This document shows positions 15,759-61,369 of a stretch of 64,000 bases of DNA, one piece after another. The position numbers were made by a program, and so were the translations under genes. A model generated the notes under the pieces. The model worked only from the letters and a program-made list of their open reading frames with translations. It was not told the origin of the DNA and made no database searches. Within the stretch, counting starts at the first letter, position 1. Each line of letters opens with the position of its first letter. Location of the stretch: the sequence record NC_042116.1, one strand, 5' to 3'.

Positions 15759-16811
15759 ATGGCAACATTAGCAGAAATTCGTGCTTTATTAAAAGCAGAA
15801 CAAGACAAAGCAGAAGCAATCAAAAGTGGTACATTCTCAGGTGGTAATGGTCAACCGGATGCGTTTTTGGCATTCTGGAACATTCCAGAGAATCAAGATC
15901 TAAATCTACGTTTTCTACCAGATTTAGATATTAATAACCCTTACTTTTGGCGTGAACGTGAGATGATTAATCTTGAGTTCAACGGAATTGTTGGTGGTCA
16001 CACCGATAAAGTTAAGTTACAAGTACCTTGTAATGAAATGTGGGTTCCTAACTCTTGTCCTATTCTAGCTGAAATTCGTCAGTGGTATAAAGCTGCAAAC
16101 GAAACAGGTAACGAAGATCTAAAGAAACAAGCATCTAAGTACTGGAAAAAGAAATCTTATCTATTCCAATGTTTAGTTGCACCAGGTTCTGTTGAAGTGA
16201 AAGACGACAATGCACCTGAAAATCCAATCCGTCGCGTTCTAGTGAACAAAGATTTGTTTGAAAAGATCAAATCAATTCTAATGAATCCAGACGTTGCTGA
16301 ACTTCCAACTCATTATGATCATGGGCGTGACTTCCGTGTAATTAAGAGTAAAAATGCTGGTGGTTATAACAACTACGATGCATCACAGTTCAAATTCTCT
16401 GAGCGTCCACTAAATGGTGATGAACTTGCTGCGATTGAACAGTATGGCTTATTTGATCTAAGTGAATTTATGCCAAAACAACCAACACCAGAAGAATTAA
16501 ATGCAATCCGTGAGATGTTTGAAGCATCTGCAAATGGTGAAGCATATGATCCTGCACGTTGGGCTGCTTATTATCGTCCAGCGGGTGTTCAAAAACCAGC
16601 AAATACTGGTTCATCTAATACTGCTGAAAGCACAACTACATCAGCTAAACCTACACAAACTGTAACTGCTCCAGTACAAACTACTGTAACAGAAACTGTT
16701 GTTGCTCAAGAAGCACCAGTTCAAGAGGCTGTAACAACAGCACCAACTGAGAGTAAGCAAAAACTTTCTCCAGCAGAACTAGTAGCTAAACTAAAAGCTA
16801 AAGGTGGCTAA
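15759..16811 (+). CDS. gp32: Single-stranded DNA-binding protein (T4 gp32-like)
   Basis: LRFLPD, CPILAEI, KYWKKKSY, GRDFRVIK, YNNYDASQF patterns; low-complexity Thr/Ala/Glu C-terminal region. Confidence 0.88.
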   Translation: MATLAEIRALLKAEQDKAEAIKSGTFSGGNGQPDAFLAFWNIPENQDLNLRFLPDLDINNPYFWREREMINLEFNGIVGGHTDKVKLQVPCNEMWVPNSCPILAEIRQWYKAANETGNEDLKKQASKYWKKKSYLFQCLVAPGSVEVKDDNAPENPIRRVLVNKDLFEKIKSILMNPDVAELPTHYDHGRDFRVIKSKNAGGYNNYDASQFKFSERPLNGDELAAIEQYGLFDLSEFMPKQPTPEELNAIREMFEASANGEAYDPARWAAYYRPAGVQKPANTGSSNTAESTTTSAKPTQTVTAPVQTTVTETVVAQEAPVQEAVTTAPTESKQKLSPAELVAKLKAKGG

Positions 16812-16875: not shown

Positions 16876-18012
16876 ATGAAAAATATTTCTGCGGCATTCA
16901 GCAGCATTATAAAAAATAGTACAGCATCAGTAAAGAAAAATTCTGGTGTAAGTATGGGATTTCATGATCCAGACACTTGGATTAGTACTGGAAATCTAGC
17001 ATTGAACTATCGCATCAGTGGTGATTTTAACAAAGGCATTCCCCTTGGTAAAGTAACTATGTTCGCTGGTGAATCTGGTTCAGGTAAATCATTCATCGTA
17101 TCTGGTAACATTATTCGCGAAGCACAGAAACAAGGTATCTATGTAGTCTTGATTGACTCTGAAAATGCTCTTGATTCAGATTGGCTAGCCGCTCTTGGTG
17201 TAGATACATCTGATGAAAAATTACTTAAAATGAATATGGGTATGATTGGCGATGTTGCTAAATTTACTTATGAATTCATTGAAGGTTATAGAAAAGAATA
17301 TGAAAATGTACCACGTGAAGAACGTCAGAAAGTACTATTTGTTATAGATAGTATTGGTATGTTGAATACTGAAATTGCAAATGCACAGATGAAAGATGGT
17401 AATCTTAAAGGTGATATGGGTCATAAGCCTAAACAACTTAAAGCATTCATTACTAATTGTGTTAACAGTATCGGTGCATTAAATATGGGTATGGTTTGTG
17501 TAAATCACTCATATGAAAGCCAAGACATGTTCAGTCCAGACCCTAAAATAAGTGGTGGTTCTGGTTTAGTTTATGCTAGTAGTATTGTAGTTGCTATGGG
17601 TAAACTTAAATTAAAAGAAGATGAAGATGGTAACAAAACAACTGATGTAAATGGTATTCGTGCTAAATGTAAAGTTATGAAGACACGTTATAATAAACCA
17701 TTTGAAGACGTTGAAATAAAAATTCCTTGGAATGAAGGTATGAATCCACGAAGTGGATTACTTGATATGTTTGAAAAATATGGTTTGATTACTAAATCAG
17801 GAAATCGACTACTTTATGTAGATATTGATACTGGTGAACAAATATTGCAATATCGCAAAGATTGGGTATTGAATACTAATTCCTGTTTAGATTTAGTAAT
17901 GGGACAATTTAAACGTCATCCATTAATTTCACATGTCACTGAAGAAGAAAAAGGTGATGAAGAATTTGGTACTGATGTTGATTTACCAACTGATGAGGTT
18001 AATGAGGGTTAA
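16876..18012 (+). CDS. uvsX: RecA-like recombinase UvsX
   Basis: Walker A GESGSGKS, LIDSENALD, VIDSIG, SGGSGLVYASS. Confidence 0.95.
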   Translation: MKNISAAFSSIIKNSTASVKKNSGVSMGFHDPDTWISTGNLALNYRISGDFNKGIPLGKVTMFAGESGSGKSFIVSGNIIREAQKQGIYVVLIDSENALDSDWLAALGVDTSDEKLLKMNMGMIGDVAKFTYEFIEGYRKEYENVPREERQKVLFVIDSIGMLNTEIANAQMKDGNLKGDMGHKPKQLKAFITNCVNSIGALNMGMVCVNHSYESQDMFSPDPKISGGSGLVYASSIVVAMGKLKLKEDEDGNKTTDVNGIRAKCKVMKTRYNKPFEDVEIKIPWNEGMNPRSGLLDMFEKYGLITKSGNRLLYVDIDTGEQILQYRKDWVLNTNSCLDLVMGQFKRHPLISHVTEEEKGDEEFGTDVDLPTDEVNEG

Positions 18013-18523: not shown

Positions 18524-19363
18524 ATGACAGAACTTGATAAATTTTTTAATAATGTTATGGTTCTAGACACTGAAACTACTGGTGTTGATGATGAATCTGA
18601 TATTATTGAGTTTAGTAGCTCATTTCCAGAAGGAAGTAATGATTCTTTTGATGGAATGATGAATTTTACTACTAGATTCAAACCAACACATGATGTTCCA
18701 CCTGATGCGTCAGCAGTACATTTTATTACAACTGAAGATTTGATAAATGAACAGACCTATTCAGTTGGACATTATGATTTTTACCCATTATTCAAACTAA
18801 AACAGTACTTTGTAGGACATAATGTGCAGTTTGATCGAAGAATGCTTCGTAAAAATCATGAACGTATGTTTGATGACGAATTTCCAGAATTTGAGGATGA
18901 CAATAGTTGGATTTGTACGTTAAAATTAGCTAAAAAATTATTTGCAGAAGACCCTGAGTTTAAAAACTTAACTTTAAGCTATTTGTGGTTCAAATTTGAG
19001 TTGTATAAAACATGTACACGTAAAATTGTACCACATAGTGCTGAAGATGATGTATATATGTGTTATAAAGTACTTTCTCATTTAGTAAATATTGCTATTG
19101 AACGTGGGTTGGTTGATACCAATAAGGAAATTGGACGACAACTGGTTAAATTATGCAATACTCCAACTTTATTCACCGTAATGACTATTGGTAAGCATAA
19201 AGGTATGTTACTTGATGAAGTACCAATGAATTATTTAAAATGGATGATTTTGAACATGGATATTGTAAATCCAGACATGCCTAACTATGATGCTGACTTA
19301 GCATATACAGTTGAAGTCGAGATTACTCGTCGCATTGATGCTGGATTGGTGGATTTTAGTTAA
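18524..19363 (+). CDS. DEDDh 3'-5' exonuclease (ExoX/DnaQ-like) with C-terminal DUF3820-like motif
   Basis: VLDTETTG, VGHNVQFD, HSAEDD; C-terminal MTIGKHKG...VPMNYLKWM. Confidence 0.9.
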   Translation: MTELDKFFNNVMVLDTETTGVDDESDIIEFSSSFPEGSNDSFDGMMNFTTRFKPTHDVPPDASAVHFITTEDLINEQTYSVGHYDFYPLFKLKQYFVGHNVQFDRRMLRKNHERMFDDEFPEFEDDNSWICTLKLAKKLFAEDPEFKNLTLSYLWFKFELYKTCTRKIVPHSAEDDVYMCYKVLSHLVNIAIERGLVDTNKEIGRQLVKLCNTPTLFTVMTIGKHKGMLLDEVPMNYLKWMILNMDIVNPDMPNYDADLAYTVEVEITRRIDAGLVDFS

Positions 19364-19395: not shown

Positions 19396-20880
19396 ATGAG
19401 TGGAATTTGTAAGTTAATACTTCAGGATGAAGTAAATTGTAAATTTGAGGGACTTGCCCCTAATATTAGGCAAGAAATGATTCGTAAAGTATCATTTGTA
19501 TTACCTTATGCTAAATTTACTCCTGCTGGAAAAATGGGCAGATGGGACGGTAAAGTTAATTTTATGAATATAGGTGGAAGCACTTATTATCATATGTTAG
19601 ATCAACTTTTACCAATTCTTGAAAAGCATAATATAATGATTGAAATTGATGATCAACGTATTACACATGATTTTGAGTTTGAGCCAATTGATGAAAATAT
19701 TTTTGATTATGTAGAATTCCCTTCTGGACATCATATGGAAGGACAAAAAATTATTTTACGTGAACATCAAGTAAATGCAGTAAATTCATGTCTTGAAAAT
19801 AGACATGGACTGCTATTAGCAAGTACAAGTTCAGGTAAAACATTAATTACTGCTGCAATGTCTAAAAGTGTTGAAAAATATGGTAGAAGTATTGTAATTG
19901 TTCCTAATAAAGATTTAGTACAACAAACTTACAATGATTATGTAATGGTCGGTTTAGATGCGGGTGTATTTTATGGTGATAAAAAAGAATTAAACCATCA
20001 ACATACTATCACCACATGGCAATCGTTAAACTCTTTATGGAAAAAAACAAAAAAAGGTGAAATTGCATTAACTGAACAAGATATTAGTGATTTTATCAAT
20101 GGTGTAGTTGCTGTTGTAGTTGATGAAGCACATACTAGTGCGGCAGAAGCCTTACATGCAGTACTAGGACAAGTAATGAAAAATATTCCATTACGTTGGG
20201 GATTAACTGGTACTATTCCTAAAGATCCAGTACTTGCAGCGAAAATAAAATGTAATGTTGGTGAAATTATATATACTATATCAGCAAAAGAGTTGCAAGA
20301 TAAACAAATTCTTAGTACTTGTAATGTAAATTGCATTAGATTGAAAAGCTCTTTAAAATTTGGTAATTATCAAGAAGAATTAAAATATCTAGTAACTGAC
20401 AAAACTAGAATGAAGTATATTGCATCAATAATTGCAGCTATTGCAGAATCTGGTAATACCTTAGTATTAGTTGATAGATTGGAAGCTGGTGAGTTATTGT
20501 GTGAATTCTTAGGTCTACCAACATCAGAATTCGTTAGAGGTGACACTAAGAAGAAAGATCGTGAAGCATCATATGGTGAAATTCGCTGGGCTGATAATAA
20601 AATACTTATTGCAACATATGGTGTGGCTAGTACTGGTATTAGTATTAGTCGTTTATATAATGTAGTACTTTTAGAACCTGGTAAAAGTTTTGTAAGAACT
20701 ATTCAGAGTATAGGCCGTGGACTTCGACGTGCAGAAGACAAAGATCACGTAGAGATTTATGACATTTCAGGTTTCAATAAGTTTAGTGCTAAGCATTCTC
20801 GTGAAAGAATGACGTACTATAAAGAAGTACAATATCCATATCACGAAATGATTGTGGAAAATTGGGAAAATATGGAATGA
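19396..20880 (+). CDS. uvsW: SF2 DNA helicase UvsW
   Basis: STSSGKT, VVVDEAH, GLTGT, ATYGVASTGISI, QSIGRGLR. Confidence 0.95.
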   Translation: MSGICKLILQDEVNCKFEGLAPNIRQEMIRKVSFVLPYAKFTPAGKMGRWDGKVNFMNIGGSTYYHMLDQLLPILEKHNIMIEIDDQRITHDFEFEPIDENIFDYVEFPSGHHMEGQKIILREHQVNAVNSCLENRHGLLLASTSSGKTLITAAMSKSVEKYGRSIVIVPNKDLVQQTYNDYVMVGLDAGVFYGDKKELNHQHTITTWQSLNSLWKKTKKGEIALTEQDISDFINGVVAVVVDEAHTSAAEALHAVLGQVMKNIPLRWGLTGTIPKDPVLAAKIKCNVGEIIYTISAKELQDKQILSTCNVNCIRLKSSLKFGNYQEELKYLVTDKTRMKYIASIIAAIAESGNTLVLVDRLEAGELLCEFLGLPTSEFVRGDTKKKDREASYGEIRWADNKILIATYGVASTGISISRLYNVVLLEPGKSFVRTIQSIGRGLRRAEDKDHVEIYDISGFNKFSAKHSRERMTYYKEVQYPYHEMIVENWENME

Positions 20881-23439: not shown

Positions 23440-23786
23440 AAAGTAAAATATACAGTGAACAAGAATTAACTACAGAAGAATTAGCTAAAAAAGAAGAATT
23501 GAAAGAAGATAGCAAACAACTATCAATTTTAAGACAAGGTTCTGTAACAGAAATTACAATGAGCGGGAAAACGTTTCAGGTTTCCGACCCTAAACGAATT
23601 GAACATGCAATTATAATTTTAGAACGACATGAAGAAGTCCTATTTACGTTAAGGCAACGTATCAAAGAACAAACTCAATCTATTAATATTTTGCTAAATG
23701 AAATTGAGAAATTGAAATCTGATGTTCAGAGATTGAAAGAGGAAAGTAATAATGGATTTGGATCACAAGAGTACACAAACTATTAA
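23436..23786 (+). CDS. Hypothetical coiled-coil protein
   Basis: Heptad-rich C-terminal half; ATGA overlap. Confidence 0.6.
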   Translation: MKSKIYSEQELTTEELAKKEELKEDSKQLSILRQGSVTEITMSGKTFQVSDPKRIEHAIIILERHEEVLFTLRQRIKEQTQSINILLNEIEKLKSDVQRLKEESNNGFGSQEYTNY

Positions 23787-24402
23787 TTATAGAAAGGCAA
23801 GAACTGATATTGACATTGATTTTAAAGATGGAAAATCAGTTATTGAACAACTTCCTTGTACTAGAAGTGTTGAAAAAATCACAGAAGATGGTTTGATTCC
23901 ACACAATAGTGGTATACATTTTGATAATATCCCAACTGACCCAATTTCTGGATTAGCATCTATACCATATAAAGAAGCCGAAAGGTTAGGATATCAAAAA
24001 GTTGATATTTTATCTCAATCGGCTTATGTACATGTGCGTGATAGAAATCATCTTAAAGAATTGATGAATAAAGAACCAGATTGGAATTTATTATTGGTTC
24101 CTGAAATAGTAGATCAATTGTCTCAAATTAAGAAACATATAACTTTGTTGAATATATGGAAACCTAGTAGTATCGATGAATTAGCAATGTTTATTGCAAT
24201 GATACGTCCAGGTAAACGTCAATGTCAAAGTATGAATAGTTGGGACGAAGTTCGGGCTGTTATTTGGGAGTATGATAGTATTGGACTCGATGCAGAAGGT
24301 AAAAAGTTAAGATACTTTAAAAAACCTCATGCATTCGCATATAGTTTGATGATAGTAGTTCAGTTAAATGCATTAGTAGAATATATTATTTCCTCTTCTT
24401 AA
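23752..24402 (+). CDS. DnaE (Pol III alpha)-like fragment carrying the catalytic palm (C-part of split mini-polymerase)
   Basis: RKARTDIDIDF = ERVSMPDFDVDF; HNSGIHF = HAGGVVI; GYQKVDIL = GLVKFDFL; IRPG = FRPG; FKKPHAFAY = FNKSHSAAY. Confidence 0.88.
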   Translation: MDLDHKSTQTINYRKARTDIDIDFKDGKSVIEQLPCTRSVEKITEDGLIPHNSGIHFDNIPTDPISGLASIPYKEAERLGYQKVDILSQSAYVHVRDRNHLKELMNKEPDWNLLLVPEIVDQLSQIKKHITLLNIWKPSSIDELAMFIAMIRPGKRQCQSMNSWDEVRAVIWEYDSIGLDAEGKKLRYFKKPHAFAYSLMIVVQLNALVEYIISSS

Positions 24403-26886: not shown

Positions 26887-28368
26887 ATGGCAATTAATAC
26901 TAACACGGACGTTAAAAAATATGATATTCAATACCAACTATATTTGCTTTCACAAATTTTTAGTACTCCCGATTTATATGTAAGATGTAAAAATGTTTTA
27001 AAACCTGACTACTTCGATAGAGAATATCATGCTAGTATTCAGTATGTTCATGATTATGCAGCTAAGTATAATATAACTCCAACTTTAAATGATATTAAAC
27101 ATAATTCGGATTTTACATTTAATGAAACTCCAGTTGGTGATTTAAATCAACAAGCAGTACTAGATAGTGTAGGTGAATTTTGTCGGCATAAAGCATTAGC
27201 ACAAGCAATTCAACAAGGAATGGAATTAGTTAATCAAAAACGCTATGGTGGAATTGAAGAATTAATTCGTGAAGCAATGTTGGTGAGTGTACAAAATGAT
27301 TTAGGTTTAGACATTTATGAAGATCCTGAAGAAGTTATAAGTTCATTAGCAACAATGCAAGGGACTTTTAAATCTGGATGGGAAACTCTTGATTATAAAT
27401 TATTTGGTGGTTTTGGTCGCCAAGAATTAGAAATATTTGCTGCTGCATCTGGTGGTGGTAAATCTGTAGTACTTCAAAATTTAGCAGTTAATTTTAGTAA
27501 AGCTGGTTTGAATGGTGCATATATTACATTAGAACTTGCTAAAGAACTTGTTGCAGTTCGTATATATGGTATGTTAGTTAATACTGCACAGATTCGTGTT
27601 AAAGTTGATATTGATGAAACTGCTGCTAAAGTTAAAATTGAAGAAAGAACAAATGGTAAATTACGTGTTCATCGACTTCCTGAATCAGTAACAACCGTTA
27701 ATGATATTGAAAGTTATATTCGTGAATTACAAATTAAAACAGGTATTAAACTAGATTATGTTTGTGTGGATTATCTTGATTTGTTAACATCAGACCGTTG
27801 TGGTCCAAATGATAAATCAAACGCTTTCGTTAAAGATAAATTTGTATCTGAAGAATTACGTGCACTTGCTATGAAAATGGACTTAACGGTGTTCACTGCA
27901 TGTCAGTTTAACCGTAGTGGTGTTGGTGGTGAAGATATAAAAAGTCAAGCACAAATTGCAGGTGGTATTTCGAAAATTTATACCGCAGATAATGTAATTT
28001 ACATCGATGCTCGTAAAGATCGTGGAGAAATGGTATTTGATTTCCAGAAAACACGTAACAGTTCAGCAGTAGGCTCACGTTTAGTTATGTCATATGATGT
28101 AGACTCATTAAGAGTACTTGATCATTATCAAACCATTCAAGAAATGCAAATTAATACTTCATTTAGACATAGTGGTAAGGTTATGGTTGGTAATGGTGAT
28201 CTAATAGCTAACCCTACTATATCTGCACCTAATGCATTGAACAAATTACAAAATACGTTATCAACAGTAAATCAAAAATCTACCATTCAAACATCGACTG
28301 ATATAAATACACCAAAGGCTGATGATAAAGTTTCAAATATACGAAACTTTTTGAATGGTAGGACATAA
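26887..28368 (+). CDS. gp41: Replicative DnaB-like helicase (T4 gp41-like)
   Basis: Walker A AASGGGKS, YITLE, VCVDYLDL, TACQFNR, QKTRN. Confidence 0.95.
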   Translation: MAINTNTDVKKYDIQYQLYLLSQIFSTPDLYVRCKNVLKPDYFDREYHASIQYVHDYAAKYNITPTLNDIKHNSDFTFNETPVGDLNQQAVLDSVGEFCRHKALAQAIQQGMELVNQKRYGGIEELIREAMLVSVQNDLGLDIYEDPEEVISSLATMQGTFKSGWETLDYKLFGGFGRQELEIFAAASGGGKSVVLQNLAVNFSKAGLNGAYITLELAKELVAVRIYGMLVNTAQIRVKVDIDETAAKVKIEERTNGKLRVHRLPESVTTVNDIESYIRELQIKTGIKLDYVCVDYLDLLTSDRCGPNDKSNAFVKDKFVSEELRALAMKMDLTVFTACQFNRSGVGGEDIKSQAQIAGGISKIYTADNVIYIDARKDRGEMVFDFQKTRNSSAVGSRLVMSYDVDSLRVLDHYQTIQEMQINTSFRHSGKVMVGNGDLIANPTISAPNALNKLQNTLSTVNQKSTIQTSTDINTPKADDKVSNIRNFLNGRT

Positions 28369-37357: not shown

Positions 37358-38065
37358 ATGTCAGTATTCAAAATTAATACAAAAAGTCACTTAGAAAAAA
37401 ATATGTTTTTCGATGAATCTGTTGATATTCAACGGTTTGAATCGTTGAAATATCCAGCAATTGAAAAACTAACAGAATCACAAAAAGGATTCTTTTGGTC
37501 ACCAGATGAAGTAGATCTATCTAAAGATCGATTAGATTTTAAAACACTTACAGATCATGAGAAACATATTTTCACATCTAATCTAAAACGTCAAATTCTA
37601 CTTGACTCAGTACAAGGTCGTGGTCCCAATTTAGTACTACTACCATATGCGTCACTACCTGAATTAGAAAACTTTATTGAAACATGGGCATTTTTTGAAG
37701 GTGCTATCCATAGTAAATCTTATACACATATTATTCGCAACGTATATTCAAATCCATCTGAAGTTTTTGATACAATGCTTGACATTCCAGAAATCACAAG
37801 CTGTGCCGCAGATATTTCAAAGTACTATGATGATTTAGATTTATATGGTACTTATTACCGTTTACTTGGTGAAGGTACTCATACAGTTAATGGTGAAAAA
37901 ATTATCATTGATTTGTATGAATTAAAGAAGAAGTTGTGGTTATGTTTGAATTCCATCAACATCTTAGAAGGAGTTCGTTTCTATGTGAGCTTTGTATGTT
38001 CCTGGGCTTTTAGTGAAATTGAAAAGATGGAAGGTAATGGTAAGATTATCAAATTGATTTGCCGT
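37358..38065 (+). CDS. nrdB: Ribonucleotide reductase small subunit, exon 1
   Basis: GFFWSPDEVDL, LLDSVQGRG, IHSKSY (radical Tyr), EGVRFY, ends MEGNGKIIKLICR. Confidence 0.95.
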
Positions 38066-38160
38066 TAATTTGAGCGGCCTTGTATAGTAATATACATTGA
38101 ATAACCCTATATATCGGTGAAACTCTTAACAAGTAATGTTGAAGACAATACCGAGATTTT

Positions 38161-38198
38161 TATAAATATCCATATGAGATGAAAACATACATGTGGAG
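38161..38198 (+). promoter_or_regulatory. Intron-internal late promoter TATAAATA and SD-sequestering hairpin for the homing endonuclease
   Basis: TATAAATA 38161-38168; tccatatg (38169-76) pairs with catgtgga (38190-97) covering the GGAG SD. Confidence 0.7.
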
Positions 38199-38205
38199 TA
38201 TTTGA

Positions 38206-38943
38206 ATGAAAGATGATTTTTACGTATATATTTGGTATAACCCTGAAAACAATAAACCATTTTATGTTGGAAAAGGAACTGGTAAAAGAGCATATGATGT
38301 AAATGATAAAAGCCGAAATGCTTTCTTCATGAGAAAGTACAATAAAATTAAAAGTACTGGCTTAGATCCATATGTTATTATTGAATATGATAATTTATCT
38401 GAGAGTGATGCACTCGCAAAAGAACACGAATTAATATTAAAATACAAACCTACATTTGAAGGTGGTATTTTAACAAATTTGTCATATTCAACTGGTGGAA
38501 AATCAACAATATCAGAAAGTACAAGAGATAAATTATCTCATAAATCTTCAGGTGAAAAAAATGGAATGGCTAGATTCACTAAAGAAGAAATAGTGGAATG
38601 CTTTGAACTGTTGATTAAAGGTTATAGTAATAAAGAAGTTGAGAAAGAAACTAATATACCGTCACATGTAATATCTGATTTACGATATGGTAAAAAGTGG
38701 AAAACGGTATATGAAATTTACAAAAACAAACTGGTAAATCTTAAAATATCTGGCTTGAATAAATATAATTTGTCATTTGAAGATAAAGTTAATATTATAC
38801 ATGATATTGCAACCAGAGATAAAAATACTCAACTTAAAGATATAGCAAAGAAATATAATGTAAAAGAAACCATGATTGTTTCCATCAATTTAAAAAGACA
38901 GTGGAAAAATATATGGCAATATTATCTTGATAAAAAATCGTAA
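38206..38943 (+). CDS. Intron-encoded GIY-YIG homing endonuclease with C-terminal HTH repeats
   Basis: FYVYIWY...FYVGKGTGKR, conserved E and N; two HTH-like C-terminal repeats; stop codon overlaps the P6/P7 junction. Confidence 0.9.
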   Translation: MKDDFYVYIWYNPENNKPFYVGKGTGKRAYDVNDKSRNAFFMRKYNKIKSTGLDPYVIIEYDNLSESDALAKEHELILKYKPTFEGGILTNLSYSTGGKSTISESTRDKLSHKSSGEKNGMARFTKEEIVECFELLIKGYSNKEVEKETNIPSHVISDLRYGKKWKTVYEIYKNKLVNLKISGLNKYNLSFEDKVNIIHDIATRDKNTQLKDIAKKYNVKETMIVSINLKRQWKNIWQYYLDKKS

Positions 38944-39108
38944 CGACTATCGAAACCACATAGAGATATGGAAGGGAGTAGAGTACTCTCAAGCGAGGGG
39001 AAACGTAGGGAATCCAGAAATGGATTATGATATAGTCTGGTCTATATAGAAATATATAGCAGCTTGGATAAAGCGGAGATAGATTAGCGAACTATCTTGA
39101 ACATCACG

Positions 39109-39525
39109 GATGAGAACTTACACTTAGCAGCAACACAAATGATATTACGTTTGCTAAAGAAAGAAGATCCTGATTTTGCTAAAATAGCAGAAGAATGTCA
39201 TGATGAAGTACAACAAATGTTCTTAGATGCTATTCAGCAAGAAGAAGAATGGGCAGACTTCTTATTCAAGGATGGTTCTATAATTGGTCTAAACGCACCA
39301 ATTCTAAAACAATATATTCGTTGGATTGGTTGTAAGAGAATGAGTGCTGTGGGTATTAAATGTCCGTACAGTATTAGTCAGAATAACCCTTTACCTTGGA
39401 CGACGAGTTGGATTAGTGGTGCAGATGTACAAGTAGCTCCACAAGAAACTGAAATTAGTTCATATATCATTGGTGGTGTAGTTAATGACATTTCTGAAGA
39501 ATCTTTTAAAGGTTTAGAAATATAA
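39109..39525 (+). CDS. nrdB: Ribonucleotide reductase small subunit, exon 2
   Basis: Begins DENLH (iron ligands), ends VAPQETEISSY; spliced product 374 aa. Confidence 0.95.
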   Translation, partial: DENLHLAATQMILRLLKKEDPDFAKIAEECHDEVQQMFLDAIQQEEEWADFLFKDGSIIGLNAPILKQYIRWIGCKRMSAVGIKCPYSISQNNPLPWTTSWISGADVQVAPQETEISSYIIGGVVNDISEESFKGLEI

Positions 39526-58528: not shown

Positions 58529-58831
58529 ATGTTTCATCCATTTTTCGACCCATCATCTTTAAGTGATAAAGAACTATATGATAAAATAACTGAAGTTTCT
58601 GTTAGAATCTCTGCTGCTAGAACATCAGGGATTCAATTTGAAATTATACAATCAATGTACACATTAATTCACGCATGTGAAGAAGAGATTAGAACTAGGC
58701 AAGCTCACAAAGATCTTGAGAGTGTTTCTAAGGAAGATAATTGTGTATTTGATTCAGATAGTTATTTAAATGACAAAGATGATAAAAAGAATGAAAATAC
58801 AAAAAAACAGAACTATAAGCGAGGATGGTGA
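58529..58831 (+). CDS. Hypothetical protein
   Basis: MFHPFFDPSSLSDKELYDKI helical hairpin; AAGG SD. Confidence 0.65.
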   Translation: MFHPFFDPSSLSDKELYDKITEVSVRISAARTSGIQFEIIQSMYTLIHACEEEIRTRQAHKDLESVSKEDNCVFDSDSYLNDKDDKKNENTKKQNYKRGW

Positions 58832-59309
58832 TGTTCGTTTAGATCTGAATGCTGTTGTTTATGCTATAAACTGCGGCACAGACATTACTTATATCCAGCT
58901 TAATGAGCAAGATGAAGTTGAACGATTGAAGTTCAATGATAATTGTAAAAAATTTGGACTTACTGAACGTATGCTAGATTATAAAATAGAACATGATAAA
59001 AATCATGAACTATGGAGATATGATCCAGTATATGATAAAATCAACTTAGAAGATTATTTCCTTTCTTTATGTAGTACTGATGTTGAACGTGATCGAGTAC
59101 TATATGAATTAGGATTGTATGAAAATTATAATATGACCAAACTATTAAGATGTATGATATGGTTGGTAGATTATCTTGACGAACATAATATTTTTTGGGG
59201 ATTAGGTCGTGGAAGTTCAGTAAGCAGCTTTTGTTTGTATTTGATTGGATTACATTTGGTTGATTCAGTGAAATACGAATTAGATGTGAACGAATTTTTG
59301 AAATGGTAA
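58791..59309 (+). CDS. DnaE (Pol III alpha)-like fragment with GS motif (N-part of split mini-polymerase)
   Basis: RDRVLYEL...WGLGRGSSVSSFCLYLIGLHLVDSVKYELDVNEFLK = ERL..EL...[36 protein letters not shown]; start uncertain (58770/58779/58791). Confidence 0.88.
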   Translation: MKIQKNRTISEDGDVRLDLNAVVYAINCGTDITYIQLNEQDEVERLKFNDNCKKFGLTERMLDYKIEHDKNHELWRYDPVYDKINLEDYFLSLCSTDVERDRVLYELGLYENYNMTKLLRCMIWLVDYLDEHNIFWGLGRGSSVSSFCLYLIGLHLVDSVKYELDVNEFLKW

Positions 59310-60418: not shown

Positions 60419-61369
60419 ATGACAAGTCTATGGACCGAAAAGTACCGACCACAAAATGTTGATGAATATGTATTCAAAAATCCAGCGTTTAAATTAAAGA
60501 TGGAAGAATGGATCAGTACTGGTCAAGTCCCACATATTGGATTTTTTGGACCAGCAGGGACTGGCAAAACTTCTGCCATTAAAGTACTAATTAATGGTTT
60601 AATACAAAATGGATTTGTTGATTCATTTGATGTTACCATTTTAAATATGTCAGATGAAGGTATTGATGCAGTACGTGAAATCGAAAATGCTGCTAGATTA
60701 TCTACCATTGGTGATTATAGAATCTTCGTACTAGAAGAAATGGAACAAATGGGCTTTAAAGCTCAAGGTTCATTAAAACGTATTATGGAAGACTATCATG
60801 AGAATGCTAGATTTATTCTTACATCAAATGAACCACACAAAATTTTAAAACCAATCATATCTCGTGTACAAACCATTAACATTGAAAAACATGATCAAGA
60901 TGAATTCACTACTAGAATTATTGAAATCCTAATCAATGAAGGTGTAGAGCTAGAAACTGAAGAAAGTTTAGATTTGGTTAATAAGTATATTAAATGTACT
61001 TTCCCTGATTTCAGAAAAACATTAAACACGTTGCAAAGTTCAGTAGTTGGTGGTAAATTAGTAAAATTAGAAGATTCAGTTGATAGTACTGCAAGTTATA
61101 GAGGGGCAATTGTAGATGCCTTAAAAGCAGGGAATATTAGACAAATGCGTGAACTTATTGTTCAAAATATTCCAGAAGATGAAATTGATGGATTCTTTAC
61201 ATTTTTATATCAAAATGTTGATATGTTCACCAATGACAGTATTAAAGAAATGAAAATAAAAATCAAAATTCGTGATGCTGTAGTAAAACAAGCAAGTGTA
61301 TCTGATAGAGAAATGAATTTATCTGCACTTTTATGTGAAGTTGATCTTATTTGTAATGATCAAATGTAA
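60419..61369 (+). CDS. gp44: Clamp-loader AAA+ subunit (T4 gp44/RFC-like; start revised to ATG 60419)
   Basis: WTEKYRP, GPAGTGKT, NMSDEGID, FILTSN, FPDFRK. Confidence 0.93.
   Translation: MTSLWTEKYRPQNVDEYVFKNPAFKLKMEEWISTGQVPHIGFFGPAGTGKTSAIKVLINGLIQNGFVDSFDVTILNMSDEGIDAVREIENAARLSTIGDYRIFVLEEMEQMGFKAQGSLKRIMEDYHENARFILTSNEPHKILKPIISRVQTINIEKHDQDEFTTRIIEILINEGVELETEESLDLVNKYIKCTFPDFRKTLNTLQSSVVGGKLVKLEDSVDSTASYRGAIVDALKAGNIRQMRELIVQNIPEDEIDGFFTFLYQNVDMFTNDSIKEMKIKIKIRDAVVKQASVSDREMNLSALLCEVDLICNDQM

Follow-up and report, generated by a model that had tools for sequence, protein, structure and literature searches.

The stretch of DNA analysed here (64,000 nucleotides, hereafter the window) comes from the genome of Yersinia phage fHe-Yen9-04 (NC_042116.1; Eneladusvirus; 354,378 bp), a Rak2-like jumbo myovirus. 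Window positions are obtained by subtracting 186,000 from the positions in the record. Two open reading frames (ORFs) in the window, g280 and g324, which are 100% identical to their counterparts in that record, resemble two consecutive parts of DnaE, the bacterial Pol III alpha protein, and are hereafter called the C-half and the N-half (coordinates are given in Table 1). A preliminary description of this DNA, made from its letters, had pointed out the 216-residue C-half ORF with five DnaE motifs and its distance of about 35 kb from the second gene. Both points were confirmed: the N-half lies 35,039 bases downstream of the C-half. The results described below support a miniaturised Pol III alpha catalytic core that is split over these two distant genes.

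The five motifs of the C-half are, in the order originally reported, RKARTDIDIDF, HNSGIHF, GYQKVDIL, IRPG and FKKPHAFAY. The C-half consists of the palm beta-sheet, which bears the DxDxD and KxD carboxylates, and of a trimmed finger with RPGK and FKxxH..Y; it has no thumb. Residues ~100-172 of the N-half form the helical, nucleoside triphosphate (NTP)-binding part of the palm with the GxGRGSS loop. In front of this part, residues 1-95 (58791..59075) form an N-terminal extension of two short strands and several helices, which matches no family. An upstream ATG at 58770 is an alternative start of the N-half and would give a protein of 179 residues; RefSeq and the relatives use 58791.

The assignment of the N-half can be made from its single sequence. 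It matched the Pfam family PF07733 (Pol III alpha NTPase domain) with 31.9 bits (gathering score 23.9, E 1.4e-7), residues 106-178 covering profile positions 23-95. In the PHROG collection the N-half is phrog_11127 (E 5e-84) and the C-half phrog_11778 (E 1e-105), both of which are labelled 'DNA polymerase'. A profile of the N-half made from 31 relatives retrieved only DnaE chains from the PDB, the best being E. coli DnaE 321-392 (E 0.0013), and hhalign aligned residues 101-172 to E. coli DnaE 323-395 (E 1.8e-6). For the C-half a profile was needed, because a phmmer search of the PDB with the single sequence gave only spurious weak matches (PrfA, E 0.11). The top matches of the C-half profile, made from 34 relatives, were again DnaE chains only. 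The best of them, Mycobacterium tuberculosis DnaE1 (E 0.0048), was matched in four collinear stretches, among them SMPDIDIDF at 412-424, the segment 567-673 from KxD to RPG, and FNKSHA..Y at 773-788. Alignment of the C-half profile by hhalign to the single E. coli DnaE sequence, with no profile on the DnaE side, gave a local match (probability 13%, E 0.0022). Individually, 13 of the 34 relatives of the C-half matched PF17657 (Pol III finger), with a best E of 3.6e-6.

Structural models were consistent with these matches. The AlphaFold2 (AF2) models had predicted local distance difference test (pLDDT) scores of 92.3 (C-half) and 84.1 (N-half). Comparison of each half with known DnaE structures by Foldseek, which had been proposed at the outset, returned Pol III alpha for all of the first 9 matches of the C-half and the first 10 of the N-half, followed by PolC in the case of the N-half. 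The probability for the best seven matches was 0.95-1.0. When the N-half model was compared with viral structures, the top matches were phage 'Pol III alpha' proteins. The resemblance of both halves to DnaE exceeds chance.

The two halves were then placed on DnaE with a residue numbering verified on E. coli K-12 dnaE. The GLGRGSS sequence of the N-half corresponds to GPGRGSG (~360-366), and its C-terminus, ..NEFLKW, corresponds to ERFLNP (389-394). In the C-half, D19, D21 and D23 correspond to D401, D403 and D405, H51 to H511, K83 and D85 to K553 and D555, R152-P153-G154 to R639-P640-G641, and F189..H193..Y197 to F756..H760..Y764. The Pol-beta-like palm signature (GS-type loop, DxD and third Asp) is complete, but it is spread over two chains. 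The N-half stops at residue ~395 of E. coli DnaE and the C-half restarts at ~399, shortly before D401/D403. This motif map puts the break within the Pol-beta-like catalytic fold, after the helix that follows the GS-type loop and ahead of the DxD strand. Residues 1-18 of the C-half have pLDDT values of 53-69 in the AF2 model, in keeping with a cut loop.

The same map shows how much of DnaE has been lost. The thumb is gone: D23 and H51 are separated by 28 residues, in contrast to 106 residues between D405 and H511 of E. coli, and the AF2 model of the C-half has a tight beta-hairpin where the thumb of DnaE is inserted. The spacing from RPG to FxKxH is 36 residues versus 117 in E. coli DnaE, and the finger comprises about 130 residues versus about 350 in DnaE. 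After Y197 only 19 residues remain up to the end of the C-half, whereas 396 follow in E. coli DnaE. The C-half therefore lacks the outer fingers as well as the clamp-binding, OB and tau-binding region. No Pfam match to a PHP domain was found in either half, and only ~95 residues precede the palm segment of the N-half. The preliminary description had claimed that the three catalytic aspartates have equivalents in the C-half, that the C-half starts where the N-half stops, that the thumb and most of the fingers are reduced to short linkers, and that the PHP, OB and clamp-binding domains are absent. All of these claims are borne out by the residue map or, for PHP, by the Pfam search.

Relatives of both halves are numerous. 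For the C-half, 192 clusters at 90% identity were obtained in a word-indexed search, and an exhaustive search of metagenomic proteins gave 700 representative clusters at 50% identity (E <= 1e-3); for the N-half there were 329 clusters. Nearly all of the best 150 of the 700 C-half clusters are no longer than the stand-alone C-half (94-233 residues, mostly about 185-215). In an alignment of 34 relatives of the C-half, down to 39% identity, D19, D21, D23, H51, K83, D85, R152, P153, K155, H193 and Y197 are invariant, and the motifs HNxG, KxD, RPGK and FKxxH..Y are kept in all of them. In the relatives of the N-half, R102, E106, G137 and G139-R140-G141-S142-S143 (GxGRGSS) are invariant. All N-half relatives terminate at ..[ED]F[LIF][KR] or no more than a few residues beyond it; the split point is conserved. 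The arginine reported at the position of R396 of DnaE is present, as R14 of the C-half, but it is restricted to the enterobacterial-phage clade; more distant relatives begin 3-5 residues before the first Asp. In comparisons with GAP32 and 121Q, in which synonymous sites are near saturation, the ratio of nonsynonymous to synonymous substitution rates (dN/dS) was 0.05-0.08 for the C-half and 0.08-0.09 for the N-half. Both genes are under strong purifying selection.

The two halves also occur together. In phage records, tblastn (E 1e-5) found the C-half in 96 and the N-half in 93. Both halves, always as separate, non-adjacent genes 11-224 kb apart, are present in every lineage checked, namely the Eneladus/Asterius/Rak2 group, Phosso, Atu_ph07, the PA5oct-like phages, SCTP-2, XacN1, RAS14 and Slickus01. 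The distance between them is 35 kb in fHe-Yen9-04, 34 kb in RaK2, 31 kb in 121Q, 44 kb in PA5oct, 15 kb in both XacN1 and RAS14, 116 kb in SCTP-2, 182 kb in Atu_ph07 and 224 kb in Phosso. The weakest tblastn match of the C-half was in Alishewanella phage Slickus01, a non-jumbo phage of 141 kb, where the N-half was found 11 kb off by a local profile search (OQ508957.1, 68346-68957 and 79796-80308; both are annotated as hypothetical proteins). Since Slickus01 carries both halves, the split enzyme is not confined to genomes >200 kb. The preliminary description had proposed to examine co-occurrence and conservation of the split point across related jumbo phages, and had counted frequent loss of the Asp triad or of one half among homologues as evidence against its reading. 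In our analysis the triad was invariant in the 34 relatives of the C-half, both halves were found in all lineages checked, Slickus01 included, and the ending of the N-half was common to its relatives.

Two metagenomic proteins among the best 150 of the 700 C-half clusters, P0302 and P0373, are single-chain fusions. P0302 (375 residues) contains the full N-half at 6-186 (hhalign probability 99.9), followed by the C-half at 189-372. P0373 (336 residues) contains only the core of the N-half at 6-110 (hhalign probability 94), without the N-terminal extension of ~85 residues, followed by the C-half at 110-320. The fusion linkers, counted from 'F[IL]K' to the first Asp, have 4-10 residues, versus 8 in E. 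coli. Both proteins are rare singletons; no close fused relatives of P0373 were found, and there were no further fused forms in IMG/VR. These natural fusions provide independent evidence that both parts act as one enzyme. On the 8-kb JGI metagenome contig Ga0669126_0033275 (region L006:1516-4181), the gene of P0373 overlaps by 4 nt with an upstream gene of 552 residues, which matches Pfam 'Replicase' PF03090 (E 2.5e-13) and has a helix-turn-helix; this small element also has an endolysin-like gene. On this one contig, P0373 and the Replicase gene look like a two-gene initiator-plus-polymerase module.

Iyer, Anantharaman, Krishnan, Burroughs and Aravind (2021; Viruses 13:63; PMC7824862) have described a split minimal Pol III alpha of group 2.2 jumbo phages. 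This phage-specific enzyme is made of two proteins, an N-terminal one that binds NTP and a C-terminal one that binds Mg2+ and template, encoded by distant genes beside a family B polymerase. The authors suggested a role in the synthesis of one strand or in repair and proposed the enzyme as a model of the ancestral enzyme. Their system is the same as that described here, and fHe-Yen9-04 is related to that group as a Rak2-like phage. The split enzyme is thus already known in silico since 2021, its authors having come to the same reading independently. Our additions are incremental: the DnaE residue map, the AF2 and Foldseek support, dN/dS, the conserved split point, two fusions, the occurrence in a non-jumbo phage and about 700 metagenomic clusters. 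With the concept published, the remaining value lies in biochemistry and genetics rather than in discovery.

Annotation of the two genes has been uneven. The CBB genome paper noticed the N-half alone, as a 'truncated' Pol III alpha, and later genome papers merely repeat annotations. The expectation that relatives carry each half annotated as 'Pol III alpha' is correct for the N-half, which is widely so named, but the C-half mostly appears under 'hypothetical', 'putative membrane protein' or a generic 'DNA polymerase'. The membrane-protein label, which appears in several GenBank records (e.g. GAP32_282), comes from a predicted transmembrane helix. We rejected this label: the hydrophobic helix 191-215 is the DnaE finger helix after KSH..AY.

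With bacterial DnaE and PolC, the phage enzyme shares the Pol-beta-like palm with GS-type loop, DxD and third Asp, and the RPG and KSH..AY motifs of the finger, all in the same order. It differs from them in the absence of PHP, thumb and post-finger region, in its two polypeptides, and in R390 and R396, which are not conserved. Shortened DnaE-like polymerases of other phages (phrog_13169, ~463 residues; Cellulophaga phage phiST, 525 residues; Pseudomonas phage PA5, 466 residues) match the N-half in sequence and structure. These proteins, however, are single chains and still larger.

On the basis of these results, we consider it quite likely that the pair forms an active composite nucleotidyltransferase. 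It is also likely, with slightly less assurance, that the two subunits associate non-covalently into a minimal C-family polymerase and operate alongside the T4-like replisome of a family B polymerase (PolB). That it is specifically a DNA-templated DNA polymerase has an even chance or a little better. In such an enzyme, the N-half would provide the GxGRGSS loop and the helix after it, the elements by which DnaE holds the triphosphate of an incoming nucleotide. From the C-half would come the beta-strands with the metal-binding carboxylates D19, D21 and D85 (D23 is also invariant) and the trimmed finger, whose RPGK and FKxxH..Y motifs position the incoming deoxynucleoside triphosphate (dNTP) in DnaE. 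Each half would be inactive alone; joined, the two would build a composite active site out of about 390 residues. Since the PHP, thumb, clamp-binding and OB domains are lacking, a distributive, short-patch polymerase would be expected. It may assist the T4-like PolB replisome by distributive, DNA-templated synthesis of short patches, for which the filling of gaps during recombination-dependent replication or repair and the extension of primers are candidates. The C-family-specific finger motifs are kept, and with them H193, the counterpart of E. coli H760, which is the proposed steric gate against ribonucleoside triphosphates. This fact points to dNTP-dependent, templated synthesis.

There are other ways to read the pair. 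The Pol-beta fold superfamily includes many non-polymerase transferases, and the thumb, HhH, OB and clamp-binding parts that grip primer-template DNA in DnaE are absent here. An active enzyme might accordingly act as a terminal transferase, make primers de novo, synthesise nucleotide signals or add nucleotides to a protein or to DNA ends. We regard a non-templated enzyme of this kind as improbable, because the invariant motifs RPGK and FKxxH..Y are C-family-specific and go beyond the generic nucleotidyltransferase signature, H193 occupies the place of E. coli H760, the window encodes a DnaG-type primase separately, and one fused relative (P0373) stands directly behind a replication-initiator gene. 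It could also be argued, from the location of the genes far apart and in different gene blocks, that the halves act independently, each being for example a decoy or adaptor for parts of the host replisome, or a structural or regulatory protein descended from dnaE. This seems very improbable, given that the break lies inside the catalytic fold while the active-site residues of both pieces are invariant, that the halves co-occur in all lineages examined, even in that of the weakest match, and that in two independent fusions they follow each other in the DnaE order, connected by a linker of DnaE length.

The term 'truncated' in the CBB genome paper would agree with decaying remnants of a captured bacterial dnaE. 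Decay, however, is hard to reconcile with dN/dS of 0.05-0.09, with invariant catalytic residues, and with lengths that are steady (172-ish and 190-216 residues) over hundreds of clusters; the conservation data effectively refute it, and we give it hardly any credence. The classic example of a polymerase gene that lies in two distant pieces, cyanobacterial dnaE, would favour a post-translational joining of the phage halves by a split intein. Both systems make a dnaE-type polymerase from two genes far apart. Cyanobacterial DnaE, however, is restored to full length by protein trans-splicing, whereas the phage core of ~390 residues has no intein fragments. The phage cut falls within the palm, immediately ahead of the DxD strand, a different place from that of the cyanobacterial cut. 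Neither half gave a Pfam intein match. The N-half ends at EFLK(W) and carries no intein N-fragment of ~100 residues, and in many C-halves only 3-5 residues precede the first Asp, which leaves no room for a C-fragment of ~35 residues. A split intein was therefore rejected, and its probability is negligible.

Several points weigh against a two-subunit C-family polymerase as the preferred reading. The C-half of fHe-Yen9-04 alone scores 12.2 bits against PF17657, where the cut-off is 22 (E 0.11), and the E-values of the Foldseek matches are modest (7e-3 to 2.5e-2). The equivalents of R390 and R396 of DnaE are not conserved, the position of R390 being occupied by Glu or Asp. The stability of primer-template binding is uncertain, as the thumb and most of the DNA-contacting elements are gone. 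PolB, a primase and an exonuclease are already present in the phage, and no missing function demands the split enzyme. The gene order shared with relatives (see below) may merely mirror the general colinearity of these genomes. In addition, no biochemical or genetic study of the split polymerase was found in the literature.

If the two-subunit polymerase is real, a natural two-piece core of ~390 residues would define a minimum for C-family catalysis and bear on the origin of the family, and the split core would be a compact, naturally split polymerase scaffold. It also raises the question of why phages with a T4-like PolB replisome keep a second, bacterial-type polymerase under strong selection. 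A further-reaching and rather unlikely proposal is that the core of ~320-390 residues is a self-sufficient, template-directed C-family polymerase, the smallest of the family. Its activity in jumbo phages would then be gated by the assembly of the two halves, and the fused form with the Rep-type initiator (one contig, L006) would be a replication module of a small replicon. If this were true, such a core would offer a functioning model of the ancestral core of Pol III.

The other replication and recombination genes of the window are listed in Table 1. The family B polymerase is presumed to be the main replicase. The split genes had been said to lie alongside a complete PolB replisome, and PolB, SSB, UvsX, UvsW, primase, helicase and clamp loader are indeed present; the sliding clamp was not located. 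Homologues of gp61 and gp41 are listed in the CBB genome paper. In RefSeq, the family B polymerase and the DnaG/gp61-like primase are labelled 'hypothetical protein' despite clear family matches.

Table 1. Positions of the two split polymerase genes and of replication and recombination genes in the window.
Feature	Position	Strand	Support
C-half of split minimal Pol III alpha (g280, 216 residues)	23752..24402	+	ORF, phrog_11778, relatives' alignment, PDB profile search, AF2, Foldseek, dN/dS
N-half of split minimal Pol III alpha (g324, 172 residues)	58791..59309	+	ORF, PF07733, phrog_11127, PDB profile search, hhalign, AF2, Foldseek, dN/dS
Family B (T4 gp43-like) DNA polymerase, 1008 residues	2747..5773	+	PF03104 and PF00136 E ~1e-21; phrog_262 E 3e-215
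SSB	15759..16811	+	
UvsX recombinase	16876..18012	+	
DnaQ/ExoX-like 3'-5' exonuclease (g273), ~95-residue C-terminal extension	18524..19363	+	PF00929 E 7e-18; phrog_192
UvsW helicase	19396..20880	+	
DnaG/gp61-like primase, 348 residues	25833..26879	+	phrog_47 E 5e-30
DnaB/gp41-like helicase	26887..28368	+	phrog_19 E 8e-67
RFC-like clamp loader, 1.1 kb downstream of N-half	60419..61369	+	phrog_168 E 5e-75

The order SSB-UvsX-UvsW-...-C-half-...-primase-helicase is repeated in a 42%-identical metagenomic relative (L009/L010), and the order N-half-...-clamp loader is repeated in two relatives of ~37-40% (L011, L012). Judged by gene order, these conserved neighbourhoods would fit a role in replication or recombination.

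The DnaQ/ExoX-like exonuclease, 4.4 kb upstream of the C-half, was considered as a dedicated partner of the split polymerase. It is common to the Rak2-like and PA5oct-like clades and also occurs in unrelated small Pseudomonas phages, and it was not among the matches listed for Atu_ph07, SCTP-2 and XacN1. Its distribution is not specific to the split polymerase, and it was rejected as a dedicated partner for this reason. It is a possible proofreader in trans, although a weak candidate.

A sigma-70 scan, a terminator scan and a search for the T4-late-type TATAAATA gave promoter and terminator signals no higher than chance level. Elsewhere in the window, NrdB (the ribonucleotide reductase small subunit) is split in two ORFs (37358..39525). 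The two pieces abut in PF00268, where they cover profile positions 6-190 and 189-281. Between them lies an ORF of 245 residues (38206..38943) with a weak match to an HNH endonuclease PHROG (E 2e-6). NrdB is a candidate for a gene split by a homing endonuclease and would be the second split enzyme of the window.

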